In this document: piece by piece, positions 4,774-58,325 of the stretch
How the letters are laid out: every line of letters starts with the position of its first letter
Position numbering within the stretch: the first letter of the stretch is position 1
Sequence record: ON529852.1
DNA: 64,000 nt
Direction: 5' to 3' (one strand)
Made by a program: the position numbers and the translations under genes
Notes under the pieces: model-generated
The model's input: the letters and a program-made list of their open reading frames with translations, nothing else
What the model was told of the DNA's origin: nothing
The model's database searches: none

Positions 4774-5282
4774 AGGCTCGGGAACTCTGCCAGGGTGAGG
4801 GGTTGCGGCGGCGCGGTCCGGAGAACTTGCAGCACGGCGTAGAAGGCGATCATCGCCGCTTCGGCCCGGCCGTCGTCCTTGACGCGGGCGAACAGATCGT
4901 AGGCGCAGGGAAAGACCTGCATGGCGCGGCGGCGCGCTTCGTTCTTGTCCTTGGGCGTCTTGGTGAGCGTCTTCCACTCCTGCGGACGCACCTTGGTCAG
5001 CATCGCCCGGCTGGCGGACGCGCCTTCCAGGATGCCGAGGTTGCGGCCGAAGTTGAACGCCGAGACGACGCCCATCTGCGGGCTGGACCAGACGTCTTCG
5101 ATGTAGACGTGATCGGGCGCGGTCGCGTCGAACAGGCGCGCGACGCCGGCCGGAGACACCGCCTCCTTGCCGCCCTTGCCCGGCTCCTTGGGCATGTCGG
5201 TGATGGCGACGGTCCAGACCTCGGTGTCGATCAGGGCCAAGGCCCCGTTCTTGCCGGGGTCAATTCCGATAATGCGGCTCAT
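4770..5282 (-). CDS. ruvC: RuvC-like Holliday junction resolvase
   Basis: IIGIDPGKNGA, YIEDV, SAFNFG and DGRAEA motifs. Confidence 0.85.
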   Translation of the reverse strand: MSRIIGIDPGKNGALALIDTEVWTVAITDMPKEPGKGGKEAVSPAGVARLFDATAPDHVYIEDVWSSPQMGVVSAFNFGRNLGILEGASASRAMLTKVRPQEWKTLTKTPKDKNEARRRAMQVFPCAYDLFARVKDDGRAEAAMIAFYAVLQVLRTAPPQPLTLAEFPSL

Positions 5283-7200: not shown

Positions 7201-7557
7201 AGTTTGGGATATTTATTAGTAGTAAATAAGAGAGGGTGTATCGGCCGCTTTCTGGGTCTCCTATTATCTCCTAAATCGTATCCCAAAATGGTAATAGAGA
7301 GTATAGGGGGTTCGCCCTGCTCCTGTAAGAGGCTCTCCTAATATCTCCTAAATCGTATCCCATAATGACAATAGAGAGTATAGGGGCACCGGCACGCCCT
7401 GTGCGGCTATCCTATCTTCTCCTAAACAATATCCCATAAATGCGGTGGTGTGGTATAGGGGCGCGCCTTCTCACCCTTTCGCCTATTTACGCCTAAGTTA
7501 TATCCCAACATTCGAGGGTCGTGCTGTCTCCTATTTCTTCTTGGATTTTATCCCATA
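7201..7557. repeat. AT-rich cluster of degenerate ~75-bp units carrying CCTA-N5-TATCCCA and GTATAGGGG (iteron-like)
   Basis: TATCCCA at 7279, 7356, 7430, 7501, 7549 and inverted at 7205-7211; GTATAGGGG at 7301, 7378, 7453. Confidence 0.8.
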
Positions 7558-7583
7558 AAAGCCTCCTCTCTGCATGGGGCAGC

Positions 7584-8859: not shown

Positions 8860-8882
8860 GAGAACCCTCTAGTAGAGGGCCG

Positions 8883-8911
8883 ATGTTAAGCTTACTGACA
8901 CTTTCTGTCAA
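8883..8911 (-). promoter_or_regulatory. Sigma70-type promoter
   Basis: TTGACA-17-TAACAT; a TATCCCAAC box lies 4 bp upstream of the -35. Confidence 0.75.
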
Positions 8912-9000
8912 GAATGTTGGGATATAAAATAACAGGAAATAGGAACCACCGCCCGCAGGTCTTTGAAAAGGCTCGACAAGACCACCGCCCGAAACGACAT

Positions 9001-9050
9001 CACTCGTGCGCTTCGCGCCCTCGTGACTGGCTTCGCCAGCCCTCCTTCGG
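9001..9050 (+). repeat. Dispersed double-hairpin element, copy 1
   Basis: CACTCGT-GCGC(TTC)GCGC-CCTCGTGA-CTGGC(TTC)GCCAG. Confidence 0.85.
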
Positions 9051-9078
9051 AACTCCCTGCGGTCGCTACTGCGTGAAC

Positions 9079-9350
9079 CTGAATCGGTCGTGTCGGTCGA
9101 AACGGTCAAGGGTTGGTAGGGCTGAATCGGTTGTGTCGGTCAAGACGGTCAAGGGTTGGTAGGGCTGGATCGGTCAAGGGTTGGCAGGGCTGGATCGGTC
9201 AGGGGTTGGCACGGCTGGATCGGGCATAAGCGATCAAGGACGGGCATGGCTGGATCGGTCAAGGCCTGGCACTCGAACGTGTTCGAGCCGGCTGGATCGG
9301 ACATCCTCGTTCAAGGCCTGGCACTCGAACGTGGTCGAGCCGGTTGGATC
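9079..9350 (+). repeat. Degenerate tandem array of CTG(G/A)ATCGG...TCAAGG units
   Basis: About 8 units of roughly 25-52 bp with pairwise duplications. Confidence 0.85.
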
Positions 9351-9445
9351 GTAGCCTCGCCCAGCAGCGTTTCAGCACCACCGTCTGGTCGGCTCCACAG
9401 CACTCGGACCTCCACGACGGGACGGCCGAACCGAGTCCAGGGCGA

Positions 9446-9501
9446 CCGGAGGTTGGCTGGCGAAGCCAGTCACGACGGAACGCCGCAGGCGTTCAGGAGT
9501 G
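9446..9501 (-). repeat. Dispersed double-hairpin element, inverted copy
   Basis: Minus strand reads CACTCCT-GAACGCC(TGC)GGCGTTC-CGTCGTGA-CTGGC(TTC)GCCAG-CCAACCTCCGG. Confidence 0.8.
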
Positions 9502-9825
9502 GAAGCGAGCGATGACATTAGGATTTGTCACCGTGCCCTTACAATCTGTCTCTGTCATTTTTCACGGCGGTGGTTGACAGCACCACCGGCAGTCCGTAGA
9601 CAACCTGGGCCGGGAGCGTTCTGCTCAGTCCGTGACCGGCTCTGGAAGAGAAGAGCGGCCGGCGCCTCCCGTACAGAGGATGCTGGTCGCTCCGATCTCA
9701 CCCCTGGCAGGCTCGGACTTTCCTGAACTTTCCTGAAAACTATCCCAACATTCCGAAGGGTCCCGCAGGACCACCGCCGTGTTGCATGTGGGACCACCGT
9801 CCGCATCGCTGCGCCAGGGCGGCTT

Positions 9826-9876
9826 CACTCGTGGGCTTCGCCCCCTCGTGACCGGCTCCGCCGGCCGCACCTCCGG
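9826..9876 (+). repeat. Dispersed double-hairpin element
   Basis: CACTCGT-GGGC(TTC)GCCC-CCTCGTGA-CCGGC(TCC)GCCGG-CCGCACCTCCGG. Confidence 0.85.
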
Positions 9877-9977
9877 TCTCCTGGTTCCGACAAGGCCTGG
9901 CACGGCTGAAGCGCAGCATCGGCTGCAACGTCAACACGGTGGTCCGTCAAGGCCCGGCACGGCCGTGTATTGCTTAG

Positions 9978-10057
9978 ACTTCCCTGAAATCTATCCCAAC
10001 AAATCGCAACACCCGAGCCGGTCAAACCGATTTTCAACCGACTCGGGCTCACGCCGG
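9978..10057 (+). repeat. Direct repeat block A (partner at 10980-11059)
   Basis: ACTTCCCT..TATCCCAA plus a 30-bp identical segment CGATTTTCAACCGACTCGGGCTCACGCCGG. Confidence 0.85.
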
Positions 10058-10059
10058 AC

Positions 10060-10896: not shown

Positions 10897-10979
10897 GGTG
10901 GTCTCTCATCACAGGCTCTAGGCCCGAGCCGACCATGATGGGCGCCGCCGTTGCTGTCAATCCGCGACAGGTTTCCTGA

Positions 10980-11059
10980 ACTTCCCTAAGCCGTATCCCA
11001 AACCGCAGGAATGGCCGGCGCATCCAAATCGATTTTCAACCGACTCGGGCTCACGCCGG
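10980..11059 (+). repeat. Direct repeat block B
   Basis: Both sub-motifs offset exactly 1002 bp from block A. Confidence 0.85.
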
Positions 11060-11828: not shown

Positions 11829-11941
11829 AAAAAGACCCGCCGGCGAACCGACGGGTCTGGATCGATCAAGATGCTGGGACCTGTTAAAGGTCCACTTGCT
11901 CGGAAGCCGAAGCCCCGGACGACACAGGATACGCGTGCCTT
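11829..11941 (-). ncRNA. Candidate sRNA G (~115 nt)
   Basis: TTGACA-17-CATAGA promoter (11948-11976), hairpins, UUCG terminator with G-U pair and U-tract. Confidence 0.6.
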
Positions 11942-24737: not shown

Positions 24738-25286
24738 TCAGATCATGTCCATGGCGCGCAGGCGCGCGGCGGCGCCGTAGACCCGGACGGTCTCACGGGT
24801 GATTCGGGGGTCGCTCAGGCTGCTGGTGACCAGAGGCGCATGGCATTCGTCGGTCGGTTCGAACACGCCCAGCGACATGGCGCGCCCGGTGTAGATTTGC
24901 TGGTAGGACAGGGGGAACGGGTAGGGGTAGTGCCCTTCCGGCCTGTCGCCGGCGCAGAACATGCGCAGATAGCCGAGGGGCTCGGGATCGCGCACGTCAT
25001 CGACGCCGGTCTCCTCACGCAGTTCGCGCAGCGCGGCGTCCAGCATCCCTTCGCCGGCCTCGATATGACCGCCCGCCATCTCGATCCCGCGCCGGGTGTT
25101 ATGCGCCAGGACCACCGCCCAGGTGTCCAGATAGGGGACCATGAAGGCGGTGCGGGTCAGGTCTTCAGGGGCCTCGTCGTCCGACAGGATCAGGTCCACC
25201 CGGTTCGGCTTCGGCAGCCAGTCGACGTCAAACTCGGTGCGTGCGATCACGGCGCCGGGCGGCAAGGTGGTCTTGGGGGTGGACAT
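24738..25286 (-). CDS. NUDIX hydrolase
   Basis: GGHIEAGEGMLDAALRELREETG Nudix box. Confidence 0.9.
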   Translation of the reverse strand: MSTPKTTLPPGAVIARTEFDVDWLPKPNRVDLILSDDEAPEDLTRTAFMVPYLDTWAVVLAHNTRRGIEMAGGHIEAGEGMLDAALRELREETGVDDVRDPEPLGYLRMFCAGDRPEGHYPYPFPLSYQQIYTGRAMSLGVFEPTDECHAPLVTSSLSDPRITRETVRVYGAAARLRAMDMI

Positions 25287-25450: not shown

Positions 25451-26536
25451 ATGAGCGGCACTGACCTGCGCGTCCGCGCGCATTTGACCTATTCCGTCAC
25501 GTCCTACCAGGATACCGGCAAGACCGGCACGAGCCGGGAAGTAGGCTCCGGCTTCACGGCTGACGTCGCAAACGAAATCGCGGAGGCCGTACATGCCGTC
25601 GCCGACGCCCCGCGCGACCTGACCCTGGTTGACGTCACCGACGCCACTTATGAAATCGCGAAGGCTGCGCATCGCGTCAGTCAGATCGTCGACGCCCCTG
25701 AAGGGACAGCCTACCTCATTGAGCGCCTGTCCCCGCGCCAAGTCCGCCTGACCGAAGTCACGCCGCAAACGCAGCGCTACACGATCGACGCCACGGTCTT
25801 GGACCTGAAGAGCAGCCTGGGTAACCTCCAGACCGTCGCCGATACGGTCAAGGATTCCATCATGCGTGAGATCAGCCGCATTAACCTGCCCGAGCGGTGG
25901 GATGACCTGTCGAGCGAGACCACCCGGCGTGGGCTGGAAGCCTTCATGGCGGTCCAGACGGTGGGCAAGGATGCCTGGCGGGATCATGAGATCGAGGGGA
26001 TGGTGAATCGCATCGCTCAGCGGACCGGCAAGGCCAAGGTCGACCTGCGGCGCATGTTTGAGAACGCCCAGGAGCGGGTGATGGAGGCCAAACGCATCCT
26101 GGCGGACGCCGTCCCGACCAAGGCGCCCCTGACCGCGCGTGAAGAGCACTACTGCAAGAACCGCGCGAAGGGTTGCACGCCCCACGACGCGGCGCGCTAT
26201 GCGGGGTTCCTCAACGATCCGACGTCGTCGTTCAATACCGCACTGCTGGAAAACTCACCCCCGATCCAGGCGCGGATCGCGGAACTGATCACCGCCAAGG
26301 CGCCCGCCGCAACCCCGACTACGGCGCAGACTCCGCCCAACGGCTCCTACCGCCTGGACAACGCCACGCAGGAGTTCTTCGCCATGAACATCGGCTTCTA
26401 CGGCATGACGGTCGAAGCGGCCGCCAAGCAGATGAGCCTGCCGCTGGAAACAGCGGACGGTCTGATGCAGATGCCGTCGGTGGAGGCGCGGATCAAGTTC
26501 TTCCAGCGCTGCGCCGCCTGGGGCGAACGCGGATGA
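25451..26536 (+). CDS. Hypothetical protein with C-terminal TerS-like HTH repeats
   Basis: REEHYCKNRAKGCTPHDAARYAGF matches TerS RNELYARHRAKGMNAAKAAMAAGY. Confidence 0.7.
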   Translation: MSGTDLRVRAHLTYSVTSYQDTGKTGTSREVGSGFTADVANEIAEAVHAVADAPRDLTLVDVTDATYEIAKAAHRVSQIVDAPEGTAYLIERLSPRQVRLTEVTPQTQRYTIDATVLDLKSSLGNLQTVADTVKDSIMREISRINLPERWDDLSSETTRRGLEAFMAVQTVGKDAWRDHEIEGMVNRIAQRTGKAKVDLRRMFENAQERVMEAKRILADAVPTKAPLTAREEHYCKNRAKGCTPHDAARYAGFLNDPTSSFNTALLENSPPIQARIAELITAKAPAATPTTAQTPPNGSYRLDNATQEFFAMNIGFYGMTVEAAAKQMSLPLETADGLMQMPSVEARIKFFQRCAAWGERG

Positions 26537-27487: not shown

Positions 27488-27562
27488 GCGTCCTGGGTGT
27501 GTTGGACAGCACGTTCAGCTTCTAACTGGAAAGGCCGGGTTCGATTCCTGGAGGACGCGCCA
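27488..27562 (+). tRNA. tRNA-Arg(UCU)
   Basis: Full cloverleaf: GCGTCCT/AGGACGC acceptor, G73, CCA, loop CT-TCT-AA, A20, GGTTCGATTCC. Confidence 0.93.
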
Positions 27563-27899: not shown

Positions 27900-27922
27900 T
27901 CGATAACGCCCAGAATGACCAC

Positions 27923-28078
27923 GCCCGGCACAGCCGATACGGCTGATCCCGTTCGGGAACATTCGCCCCAAGCCCGGCACAGCCGATACGGCTGATCCCG
28001 TTCGGGAACATTCGCCCCAAGCCCGGCACAGCCGATACGGCTGATCCCGTTCGGGAACATTCGCCCCAAGCCCGGCAC
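27923..28078 (+). repeat. Perfect tandem repeat, 3 x 49 bp plus 9 bp
   Basis: Unit GCCCGGCACAGCCGATACGGCTGATCCCGTTCGGGAACATTCGCCCCAA starts at 27923, 27972, 28021, 28070. Confidence 0.95.
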
Positions 28079-28265
28079 GGCCGCAGCGTTTTGATCCCGA
28101 ACGGGATCACGCCGATGGTCGCCATATCATCCGCAACGGCCGATACGGGTTGATATGGGCGCCATCAGGGCCGGCGGGCAGTCGAGGCGGATGCATCAGA
28201 TATGACGCACGGGCTACGGCTGTCGGTATGTTTGACACCCATCGCCTGCTGTGTCATGCAGAGGG

Positions 28266-55540: not shown

Positions 55541-56262
55541 GCCGGAGCCTGAGGCGCACGGCCGTAAGCGGTTTCCTGGATGTGGCGCAGGATGTGCGGC
55601 CGATACGCGTTCGCCGCCTTAGCCCCTGCGCCCGAGATTGCAGCGGTCGTGGGCCTGAACGTCATGTAGGCGCCCTGGGCGTCTGCCGCCGCGTAGTAGG
55701 GGTAGACCAGACCGGCCTGCATGGCGCCCGCGTATTCTTCATGGATGAACTTGCCGAACGACCCGAAGGAATCCGTGGCGTCGGCGCGCCGCAGCAGCAG
55801 GGCGTCGACCCGTTTGTTGAGGGGCTGACGCGCGCCTTCCCAGTTCCAACGCGACGCCATGCGCCGGAAGGCCAGGACCTGCGCGGGATCAGGGAGCGTC
55901 TTTTCGCAGGCGTAAAGCCGCCCTTTGAGCGTGACGCCCCAGAGGATGGGGAGCCCGCGCGTCGTTTCCGCCACCGCCAGGCGGCCGTCCTCCACGGCCT
56001 GGTCAACCAAACCTCGCAGGGCGGGATCGTCGCGCATGGGCGTGCAGTGGTCGTAGTCCGGGACCAGACCGGCGGTGTCGTCATGCCCGTCGGCGAATAG
56101 GTACAATGCGCCAGAGGCGGCGACCGCCGCCCACATGGCGTCGTCCTCCATCCGGGCGCTCTCGGGGTCCATGCCTTGCGGCGCGGGCGCGATGCCGGCG
56201 ACGGCCGGCAATCCGACCAGGGCGGCGAGCGCGGTGAAGACGGTGCGTCGGTTCAGGTTCAT
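55537..56262 (-). CDS. Exported protein with Tat-like signal (NRR..F), probably leaderless
   Basis: MNLNRRTVFTALAALVGLPAVA; TTGACA-17-CAGAAA then 6 nt to ATG. Confidence 0.6.
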   Translation of the reverse strand: MNLNRRTVFTALAALVGLPAVAGIAPAPQGMDPESARMEDDAMWAAVAASGALYLFADGHDDTAGLVPDYDHCTPMRDDPALRGLVDQAVEDGRLAVAETTRGLPILWGVTLKGRLYACEKTLPDPAQVLAFRRMASRWNWEGARQPLNKRVDALLLRRADATDSFGSFGKFIHEEYAGAMQAGLVYPYYAAADAQGAYMTFRPTTAAISGAGAKAANAYRPHILRHIQETAYGRAPQAPA

Positions 56263-56526
56263 GCCGCTTTTCTGCCTTGTCGATTTTTTCGTGTCAACCG
56301 CAACGGCGCCGGTTGACAGCAATCCCGGCACATGCGAGAAGGACCACCTCGGCGGCGCGGTCCCAGGACAGCGTCGTCGGGCGATCTCGACCGGCACACG
56401 GGCTTGGGAAGATCAGAGGAATAGATGGGGAACCACAGCAGCGCTCCGGCGGGCTGCCCGATCACCGCGCTATCCTTGCGGACCCCTCAGGGGATAGGCT
56501 CTGACGCCGCAAAGATGTCGAGAGGA

Positions 56527-56810
56527 CGGACCCTGCTGAACGGCGCTGTAACGCCGCCTCGGTAGGAACAAGGTCGAGCCGTATCGCCCTTCGGGCGCTG
56601 CATCGACTGGACCCCGCCCATTACCAGTATCGTAGGTGGCTAAGCGTTCGCCTCCCCCGTCCGGGACATGTACCGGCCGGACCGAGAGGTATTCGCGAGG
56701 CGAGCACGCCAGGGTTACGTCACCGAAGCCGGTTCACCCGCCCGGCGCGATCGAGGGTCCATGGCCCTCCTTACCAAACCCCCGTCGGCTCGCGCCGGCG
56801 GGGGTCTCTT
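56527..56810 (+). ncRNA. Candidate multi-domain RNA D
   Basis: Long-range helices GGACCCT/AGGGTCC, CTCGGT/ACCGAG, TTCGCCTC/GAGGCGAG; UUCG hairpin; terminator-like stem at 56777-56810. Confidence 0.5.
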
Positions 56811-56821
56811 CTTGAGGGCCT

Positions 56822-57040
56822 ATGCCGTACCAGATCAGAATCACCGCCGTCGATTGCGAAACCCTCTCGGGCCAGACAGGCCTCAAGGGGATGATCTCAG
56901 GCTTGCGCACCATGAAGGCCTGGGCCGAGGAACATACGCCGGGATGGACCTACATCGCGGGCCTTCAGCGGTTCCAATTCCAGACGGCGGAGGACTTGGA
57001 CCGGTTCGAAGCGACGTTCAAAAGCGCGCCGGAGGCCTGA
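56822..57040 (+). CDS. Hypothetical protein
   Basis: SD GAGG. Confidence 0.55.
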   Translation: MPYQIRITAVDCETLSGQTGLKGMISGLRTMKAWAEEHTPGWTYIAGLQRFQFQTAEDLDRFEATFKSAPEA

Positions 57041-57317
57041 CGAGTCTTCAAGGCTGAATCCGGACCGGACCTGAAGGTGCCGGGTCTCGTGATGATCCGG
57101 TCTGATTTTCCTGGTGTTTCCTGCGCCTTATCCCAACAATTTGTTAAGACCTCCGACGGCGCCTCCAGGCGGACTCGCTGCGCTGTTGTCGGGCGAGGCT
57201 TCCCTGCCGCCGGGGGATGGCGGAGCCTCGCGGCCGGAGCGTAATCGGGGGGCGTCATGCGCTCGCACAGGGAAGTGTCCTGCCAAGGACAAGGCTTTGT
57301 GGCACACTTGGGGCGAA

Positions 57318-57568
57318 ACGAAAAGCCCCGCCGGAGAACCGACGGGGCTTATCCACAAGGGAAGGTCCTAAGACCTCGCTCGGTGCCTCTTGCCTTACGG
57401 CTATCCCGCACAACGCGTGGACCCCTTACAGGGCGGGTGGACGCTTTTGCTCCGAAGAGCGCAACCGATCTATCGTCCGAAACAGGGTGAGACCTCGGCG
57501 GCCGCACGAGGTCTCGGGCGTTCTCAAGCCGGCGTTCCGATCCTCGTACTGACCGGCGATTGAACAGC
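57318..57568 (-). ncRNA. Candidate multi-branch RNA C (~250 nt)
   Basis: TTGACT-17-CATACT promoter (57573-57601); two GUAA and one UUCG tetraloop; terminator with U-tract. Confidence 0.65.
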
Positions 57569-57597
57569 CGGGAGTATGGCCCAGCTTGACTGTAAAG

Positions 57598-57942
57598 TCA
57601 AGACCGCGCGGCGAGGGAGCAGGCCATGGAGTTCGGATCGTAGTCGTTGGATCGGTAGCCTTCCGCAAACAGGTAGGTCTGGCCGCCGGTCTGGAAGGTG
57701 TAGACGACGCAATGTTCGCCCGTGAAGACCCGCGTCAGACCGACGGCGGCGCGTTCCTGGGCGGCCTTGTCAGCGGCGAAGCGCCGTCGTTCCTCGGCGG
57801 TCATCGGCCGGGTCTGATTCGGCCCCACGTCGACGAGGGTCGGGACGTGCTCGACCGGCGGCGCCGGGCTCTGCGACGGCGCATTGCAGGCGGCCGTCAG
57901 CAGCATGGCGGCGGCGGCGAGGATGAGTGTGGTCTTGGTCAT
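57598..57942 (-). CDS. Lipoprotein
   Basis: Lipobox LTAAC; paralog of 58388-58696. Confidence 0.75.
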   Translation of the reverse strand: MTKTTLILAAAAMLLTAACNAPSQSPAPPVEHVPTLVDVGPNQTRPMTAEERRRFAADKAAQERAAVGLTRVFTGEHCVVYTFQTGGQTYLFAEGYRSNDYDPNSMACSLAARS

Positions 57943-57998
57943 GGGGTCCTTTCGAGGGAGCGGCCGGGATTCCTCCCGAGGGCGGCTCCGAGATGGGG

Positions 57999-58325
57999 TT
58001 AGTCGTCTAAATCAGGATGCCAGCCTGCTGGACGCGGCTCCGGCTTCCAGCGGCGATCTTCCCCGGTCGGGAAGCCGAACTTCAGCACCATGTCGTAAGA
58101 GTCCCAGAACGCACGCGCCTGGGGATAGGCGACCAGCACCAGATACAGCGCCATAAGGCCGTTCAGTGCGGGGATCAGGAAGAACAGCATCACCGGGAAC
58201 ATCATCATAGGTTGGATGACCGCGTTGCCGTAATCAGACCGGCTCCACCAGTGGGCGCTTTGGATGATGAAGACCCCGCAGACGCACATAGGTGCGAGCC
58301 AGCAGATCAGGAATGGGACAGGCAT
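57999..58325 (-). CDS. Two-TM membrane protein
   Basis: Hydrophobic segments; SD GGAGG. Confidence 0.6.
   Translation of the reverse strand: MPVPFLICWLAPMCVCGVFIIQSAHWWSRSDYGNAVIQPMMMFPVMLFFLIPALNGLMALYLVLVAYPQARAFWDSYDMVLKFGFPTGEDRRWKPEPRPAGWHPDLDD

Follow-up and report, generated by a model that had tools for sequence, protein, structure and literature searches.

RNA C, a candidate structured non-coding RNA gene in an annotation-free gap of Brevundimonas phage vB_BpoS-Kabachok

The window analysed here, 64,000 nucleotides in full, is the first 64 kb of the genome of Brevundimonas phage vB_BpoS-Kabachok (ON529852.1), with coinciding coordinates, and the element in question is RNA C, a predicted non-coding RNA on the minus strand that a first-pass annotation of the letters had described as a stand-alone unit of about 250 nt. 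Kabachok is a siphovirus of 356,285 bp belonging to the Dolichocephalovirinae, with B. pondensis LVF1 as host of isolation (PMC10070969). The annotation of its genome holds 486 hypothetical proteins, and tRNAs are the sole annotated RNAs. RNA C sits within a 557-bp annotation-free gap (57041-57597). One side of this gap is flanked by a small plus-strand coding sequence (CDS; 56822-57040) that converges on RNA C, and the other by its upstream neighbour on the same strand, KABACHOK_01100 (57598-57942, minus), annotated as a 114-aa hypothetical protein and without a Pfam or PHROG match.

A consensus scan identified a near-consensus sigma-70-type promoter, TTGACT-17-CATACT, at 57573-57601 on the minus strand, confirming the canonical promoter of the first-pass annotation, with the -35 hexamer overlapping the stop codon (57598-57600) of the upstream same-strand CDS. 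This was the sole promoter-like site in 2 kb (0.3 expected from shuffles), and its class was represented by one site in the window and six in the 356-kb genome, the other five belonging to a transfer-messenger RNA (tmRNA) gene, an unannotated 1.1-kb gap and three CDSs. Both hexamers were unchanged in all five Kabachok-type phages, although the end of the adjacent CDS diverges. The palindrome CTTGAC-N6-GTCAAG, in which the -35 hexamer had been placed, does overlap this hexamer in Kabachok but is imperfect in the relatives Marchewka and Bambus; a conserved operator therefore finds no support here and was rejected.

At the other end, a terminator scan located an intrinsic terminator (57319-57350, minus) consisting of a 12-bp G+C-rich stem (57350-57323) with nine G-C pairs, a 4-nt loop and four U, in agreement with the U-tailed terminator first noticed; the upstream and the convergent CDS have no other terminator-like site between them. 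The KABACHOK_01100 mRNA would share this terminator as its own end. Assuming a start about 7 nt past the -10 hexamer and a 3' end at the U tract, the predicted transcript spans 57318-57566 and measures about 249 nt, so that promoter and terminator bracket a unit of the length originally proposed, with all of its listed elements on the minus strand. A BLAST search of RNA C against the Kabachok genome returned only one other significant match, a terminator hairpin at 11830-11855 (minus) that is 92% identical to the RNA C terminator over 26 nt.

The whole gap is kept at the same location as in Kabachok in four other phages described by the same study, Domovoi, Papperlapapp, Marchewka and Bambus, with RNA C identities of 97-98% in the two conspecific phages and about 83% in Marchewka and Bambus, exceeding the 71% of the CDS immediately upstream. 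A 51-nt BLAST match further led to a shorter version of about 190 nt in Kikimora and Gurke, which has its own promoter (TTGACG-17-TATACA), at least 75 nt past the upstream stop codon, as well as its own terminator. The flanking genes of these copies are unrelated to the neighbours of RNA C in Kabachok, and the gene preceding the Kikimora copy is no homologue of KABACHOK_01100. Considering that the element carries its own promoter and terminator among unrelated genes, the unit appears to be autonomous, and linkage of RNA C to a neighbouring gene was rejected, as the neighbours differ between the two phage groups. Directly past the RNA C copy of Kikimora, at about 5,000-5,190 (plus), we also observed a second promoter of the same type, TTGACG-17-TATACG, with a further non-coding stretch, the counterpart of which in Gurke is annotated as a 65-aa CDS.

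A three-hairpin core (57392-57433), with a short conserved stretch after it, is common to all seven phages. We built a covariance model, R1, on this shared core and ran it on the window, the Kabachok genome and the loci of the relatives. The model scored 74-116 bits in the seven orthologues, and no other site exceeded 15 bits, whether in the window, elsewhere in the Kabachok genome or in the other loci examined; neither R1 nor BLAST found a second copy of RNA C in the Kabachok genome. BLAST against phage and plasmid collections recovered the seven phages only, with no match among PLSDB plasmids, and exact-pattern scans of IMG/VR with the core and with the loop of the 5' hairpin gave no match. 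Two matches to the core pattern in metagenomes of the Joint Genome Institute and three in GTDB, which was scanned with one genome per species, lacked the flanking hairpins and were rejected as chance. As far as these searches see, the family would be limited to this phage clade, and in the literature we found no description of non-coding RNAs in these or in phiCbK-like phages.

Two features of the locus could also suit a structured 3' untranslated region, or a buffer between convergent units, in which the stretch would have no function in trans, its conservation would reflect termination and stabilisation of transcripts, and the promoter would be fortuitous or minor: the upstream minus-strand genes have no other terminator before 57350, and this terminator is closely followed by a conserved block and a convergent CDS. 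Yet about 35 nt would suffice for a terminator, compared with 250 nt of conserved hairpins here, the promoter hexamers stay invariant where the CDS end does not, and in Kikimora and Gurke the core persists in a different gene context, served by a separate promoter. We accordingly regard a mere 3' untranslated region as quite improbable.

Seven hairpins were found between promoter and terminator, and every hairpin listed in the first-pass annotation was recovered in its place on the minus strand. The 5' hairpin H1 (57523-57564), TTCAA..GCCGG/CCGGC..TTGAG with a small apical stem, is present in the Kabachok-type phages only, its pairs being invariant except for one terminal U-G that becomes U-U; a competing 5' hairpin proposed by the single-sequence fold was rejected, since its pairing is disrupted in three relatives. 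H2 (57489-57515), formed by GAGACCTCG/CGAGGTCTC with 9 + 2 bp, is invariant in the five phages and absent from Kikimora and Gurke. In the H3 domain (57437-57478), an invariant outer stem GGACG/CGTCC surrounds the 4-bp hairpin GCTC(TTCG)GAGC (57449-57460), the inner stem of which changes from U-A through U-G to C-G, with UUCG, CUGG or CUUG in the loop.

The core common to the seven phages, defined by the BLAST link to Kikimora and by alignments, comprises hairpins H4, H5' and H6. H4 (57422-57433), CCCT(GTAA)GGGG in Kabachok, pairs CCCU with GGGG, undergoes a U-G to C-G change and carries a variable cap (GUAA, GUGA, GCAA or UCAC, longer in Gurke). H5' has an invariant stem of 3 + 3 bp with a bulged A and a variable loop of 4-5 nt, and H6 (57392-57401), GCC(GTAA)GGC, consists of 3 bp plus a tetraloop, with C-G replaced by U-A between the two phage groups and GUAA, UUCG or GAAA in the loop. 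Throughout the core, stems and junction are invariant while the loops vary. The last hairpin before the terminator, H7 (57363-57376; AGGTC/GACCT), shows a U-A to U-G change and a loop change from UUAG to GUCA in Marchewka and Bambus, in which the linker after H7 has also lost 5 nt.

The GNRA and UUCG loops to which attention had first been drawn are present as listed. Since they replace each other between phages, these loops more probably cap the stems for stability than make conserved tertiary contacts. Beyond the local hairpins, a candidate long-range helix, crossed by the outer stem of H3, would join 57461-57468 with 57380-57386, where G-C to G-U and GC/GC to GA/GA changes occur. GGACG/CGTCC crosses UCGGU/A[C/U]CGA, and the two helices would form either a pseudoknot or alternative structures; a closing helix CUCUU/AAGAG from the single-sequence fold was rejected, being lost in Marchewka. 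On the basis of these comparisons, the local hairpins of the predicted RNA are well supported and its long-range part is a candidate only.

In the alignment of the five phages, 96.4% of pair cells held standard pairs, compared with 34-54% when the partners were slid by one to three columns. Compensatory pair changes were located in the H3 inner stem, in H6 and in the terminator, where Marchewka has U-A in place of C-G, and one-sided changes that keep the pair (among G-C, G-U and A-U) were located in H4, in H7 and in the candidate long-range helix. Changes to both partners are seen in only two or three pairs, the majority of pairs being invariant. Insertions and deletions, of 1 nt several times and of 5 nt once, are confined to loops and linkers. 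Both the MAFFT alignment and the model alignment misplace the 1-nt deletion in the H5' loop of Marchewka and Bambus, and the H5' cells that look broken are artefacts of alignment, since a 4-nt loop allows the helix to form.

Folding energies were compared with those of shuffled sequences. RNA C of Kabachok gave z = -2.58 (2 of 200 shuffles folded as well), the Marchewka orthologue z = -4.34 (none of 200) and the Kikimora orthologue z = -2.06. The opposite strand reached z = -2.34, and given this nearly equal folding, the choice of strand relied on promoter, terminator and G-U pairs, four of which become A-C mismatches on the opposite strand.

Such folding of both strands would also be compatible with an element acting as DNA, such as a protein-binding, replication or packaging site, and open reading frames (ORFs) of 52-80 codons that overlap the stretch could point to a missed small protein gene. 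However, tetraloop swaps and G-U pairs are signs of constraint at the RNA level and on one strand, and no repeats or iterons were found. Between relatives, these ORFs differ in frame, start and length, with the indels of 1 and 5 nt shifting all frames, and no AUG occurs within RNA C. A protein-coding gene was thus rejected for want of an AUG and of any ORF with conserved frame or bounds, upholding the initial view that the stretch holds no credible ORF, and we give hardly any credence to a DNA-level element or small protein gene as an explanation.

Known RNA families were searched with Rfam 15 (4227 models), using a gathering-threshold scan of the whole window and permissive scans (expect value E up to 10) of 56900-58000 and 56200-57350. 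The gathering scan returned only a tRNA-Arg at 27488 and left RNA C unmatched, while the permissive scans returned only terminator look-alikes of at most 20.8 bits, against thresholds of 41-112. The Rfam comparison recommended at first reading has therefore yielded no family at either level of stringency, and the ribozyme families gave no match at RNA C even at E = 10. ARAGORN called no tRNA or tmRNA at RNA C, and neither ARAGORN nor the Rfam tmRNA models found a tmRNA anywhere in the window; RNA C showed no tRNA-like domain or tag frame.

Several known types of RNA were rejected on other grounds. For 6S RNA, there was no Rfam match at E up to 10, and the folds consist of separate hairpin rows and a multi-branch junction. 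A riboswitch or cis-acting leader was excluded because no same-strand gene follows RNA C: no minus-strand CDS lies past the terminator, where the stretch carries frame-breaking indels, the next gene (56822-57040) converges, and no riboswitch model matched. Against a group I or II intron, the upstream CDS has its own stop, no ORF continues downstream and no intron model matched. A type III antitoxin of the ToxI kind was rejected in the absence of any tandem repeat in 57000-57700 at the lowest score threshold. Retron RNA, omega RNA, bridge RNA and tracrRNA were rejected as the ten flanking proteins lack marker domains, their only Pfam domain being a CYTH triphosphatase 2 kb away, and as the neighbours differ in Kikimora.

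RNA C combines a promoter and terminator of its own, conservation, retained pairing, broken reading frames and the lack of any known family, with covariation statistics that are weak. These findings bear out the first-pass annotation, which had proposed an independent non-coding RNA without assigning it a function. We consider it highly probable that RNA C is a real RNA gene, and the comparative evidence describes it as an independent, putatively non-coding gene founding a new and narrow family.

As for how such an RNA might work, host RNA polymerase with the housekeeping sigma factor would initiate at the near-consensus promoter, transcription would stop at the strong hairpin and U tract, and the product would fold as a row of G+C-rich hairpins with very stable tetraloop caps. 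The central three-hairpin junction, as the only part held in common with Kikimora and Gurke, may then offer a surface for recognition by a host or phage protein. Invariant core stems with variable loops are what would be expected if helices and junction were recognised. Long antisense pairing or control of a downstream gene would not be favoured for RNA C: complementarity of the phage genome to it nowhere exceeds 13 nt, shuffled queries do equally well, and no CDS follows it on its strand. Because the unit is autonomous, single-copy and nearly all helical, with a conserved junction and no long antisense match, our preference goes, tentatively, to an RNA that acts in trans as a folded molecule bound by protein, serving as platform or decoy. 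The combined statement, an RNA gene together with this trans-acting, protein-bound mode, is one that we would hold with somewhat less than even confidence.

Several results weigh against this interpretation. The covariation is statistically weak, since 39 of 500 column shuffles reach the observed score; the set consists of seven sequences in three lineages, and the test is weak because these sequences are few and close. With about 83% identity to Marchewka, RNA C is conserved to an extent also seen among the neighbouring CDSs (71-97%). The neighbouring proteins are without recognisable domains, and a promoter at the end of a CDS combined with a shared terminator is also typical of base-pairing small RNAs (sRNAs).

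A base-pairing sRNA at the 3' end of an operon, using a short seed against host or phage mRNAs and probably working with Hfq, is indeed the main rival reading. RNA C has the layout of a 3'-end-embedded sRNA, its promoter lying at the end of the upstream CDS and its terminator being shared: the -35 hexamer overlaps the upstream same-strand stop codon, no other terminator precedes 57350, and the 3' end is a hairpin with a U tract. The H1 loop and the linkers moreover contain invariant unpaired stretches that could serve as seeds. Yet the distant copies lack these Kabachok-type stretches, and the part common to Kikimora and Gurke is a helical junction and not a single-stranded seed. RNA C is also long and almost wholly paired, its U tract counts four U only, and no match to a phage transcript exceeds 13 nt or does better than shuffles. 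A seed-pairing sRNA is on this evidence unlikely.

The promoter class of RNA C leads to a second RNA locus of Kabachok. At about 194,435-194,690 (minus) we observed an unannotated permuted (two-piece) tmRNA gene, scoring 57.1 bits on RF04321 against a threshold of 47 and possessing a TTGACA-17-TATACA promoter of its own as well as a tag-like reading frame. The gene escapes ARAGORN, and the genome paper detected no tmRNA (PMC10070969). The region at about 193.5-195.1 kb (minus) looks like a single stable-RNA operon of 1.5 kb, in the order promoter, structured leader, tRNA-Cys, tmRNA, about 450 nt of G+C-rich unannotated RNA, tRNA-Met, tRNA-Met and terminator. The stem-loop that opens the leader is a homologue of the 5' module found in RNA C of Kikimora and Gurke, and the stem shows compensatory changes. 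Nearby, two gaps of about 1 kb, 195,970-197,095 and 198,480-199,459, are unannotated and without an Rfam match at the gathering threshold; the former may be a further RNA gene because it holds a near-consensus promoter, TTGACG..CATACA at 196,764 (minus), one of the six in the genome.

These connections raise an alternative in which RNA C is a substrate, product or decoy in a phage system of stable RNAs and RNA repair, or a catalytic RNA; it could be processed, ligated or bound by tRNA-handling enzymes, or could distract a host defence that targets RNA. The promoter class is common to RNA C and the permuted tmRNA gene, and in Kabachok-type phages the transcript of the tRNA-Cys/tmRNA operon begins with the element found as the 5' module in the Kikimora and Gurke copies. 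The genome is, besides, annotated with RtcB, an RNA ligase, a CCA-adding enzyme, a tRNA-His guanylyltransferase, a peptidyl-tRNA hydrolase, tRNA synthetases and an alternative ribosome-rescue factor. On the other hand, RNA C itself drew no tRNA-like or tmRNA-like call and no Rfam ribozyme match at E = 10, and the argument draws on the promoter type and on one module that BLAST does not find in Kabachok RNA C. A link of RNA C to the stable-RNA genes of the phage is no more than suggested, and we judge a role in such a system, or as a catalyst, to be improbable. A bolder proposal would have RNA C found a new class of phage RNA with the junction as its functional centre (a ribozyme or a ribonucleoprotein subunit), belonging with the tmRNA and the tRNA operon to a toolkit for translation and RNA repair whose modules are exchanged; this we regard as a long shot.

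RNA C is one of several putative non-coding units within 1.3 kb. A conserved non-coding block, not shown to be part of RNA C, lies at 57105-57317, directly past the terminator; more than 100 nt of it are invariant in the five phages, and indels break every frame. It folds better as plus strand (z = -2.20, in a fold that includes the shared terminator hairpin) than as minus strand (z = -0.57) and may be a convergent RNA sharing its terminator hairpin with RNA C; if transcribed rightwards, it would converge on RNA C at this hairpin. Further to the left, at 56310-56810 (plus), a candidate non-coding unit of about 460 nt extends between TTGACA (56313) and a 12-bp terminator (56778-56805), without an Rfam match. 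Over 56382-56525 it shares 85% identity with unannotated stretches of Kikimora (24749-24893) and Gurke (25614-25758).

A motif search also revealed a repeated motif of about 34 nt, ending in TATCCCAACA or a close variant, with about ten copies in the window, in long intergenic gaps between minus-strand genes. Plus-strand copies lie at 277-310, 7256-7559 (five, spaced by 71-77 bp plus one spacing of 48), 9718-10002, 10970-11002 and 57106-57139, the last of which precedes the conserved block just described, and a single minus-strand copy lies near 8923. Its copies could be promoters used by a phage-specific factor, or else sites bound by a protein.

Another promoter-like motif on the minus strand, composed of TTGACA, a conserved 17-nt spacer and TACA, belongs to a different class from the RNA C promoter and occurs at 13 sites of the window upstream of runs of small hypothetical genes, among them 18980, 19918, 23115, 42314, 48782, 58733 and 61652. 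Elsewhere in the window, tandem direct repeats lie in non-coding DNA: units of about 25 nt occupy 9082-9269, within a gap of 1.2 kb (8860-10059), and three 49-nt units occupy 27919-28083, just downstream of the tRNA-Arg gene (27488-27562).

The annotation of giant phages covers almost solely proteins and tRNAs. RNA C suggests that such genomes contain conserved structured RNA genes outside every curated family, and it is accompanied by an island of non-coding units and by an unannotated tmRNA operon with the same promoter type. If abundant in infected cells, RNA C would offer a compact, tetraloop-stabilised molecule for structural work and a handle on how the phage takes over or supplements host RNA metabolism. 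Should it be an ordinary regulatory sRNA, the gain would be a corrected annotation and one more family of phage sRNAs.

Among known systems, DapZ and MicL of enterobacteria are sRNAs whose genes lie within the 3' end of an mRNA and have a separate promoter, and sRNAs of this type measure 80-150 nt and have a single-stranded seed that works with Hfq and a long U tail. RNA C resembles them in having its promoter at the end of the upstream same-strand CDS and a terminator shared with that mRNA; unlike them, it is about 250 nt long and nearly all helical, ends in four U, conserves a junction and has no phage target beyond chance. The namesake RNA C of phage T4 and its companion RNA D (species 1 and 2) are stable RNAs adjoining tRNA genes and cut from a co-transcript with the tRNAs. 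Kabachok RNA C is likewise phage-encoded, non-coding and stable-looking, in a phage with its own tRNA set, but has no sequence or Rfam relation to the T4 RNAs; it possesses a promoter and a terminator of its own, and the nearest tRNA/tmRNA operon is 137 kb away.

With the phage tmRNA gene (RF04321), RNA C has the same rare promoter class in common, and the leader of the tmRNA operon shares a 5' module with the Kikimora and Gurke copies. RNA C differs from the tmRNA in lacking a tRNA-like domain and a tag frame, and model R1 misses the tmRNA locus. A likeness of the core to the stretch after the tmRNA tag frame, seen by eye, was rejected as unsupported by BLAST and by R1. Finally, among the structured phage RNAs that bind proteins, the prohead RNA of phi29 is a folded molecule that acts as a protein-binding platform, forming a ring on the portal of phi29-like podophages. 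RNA C has no sequence or structural relation to it, and nothing points to packaging; the likeness concerns the proposed mode only, in which a folded RNA encoded by a phage, 120-250 nt long and transcribed from a promoter of its own, may provide a platform for protein binding.

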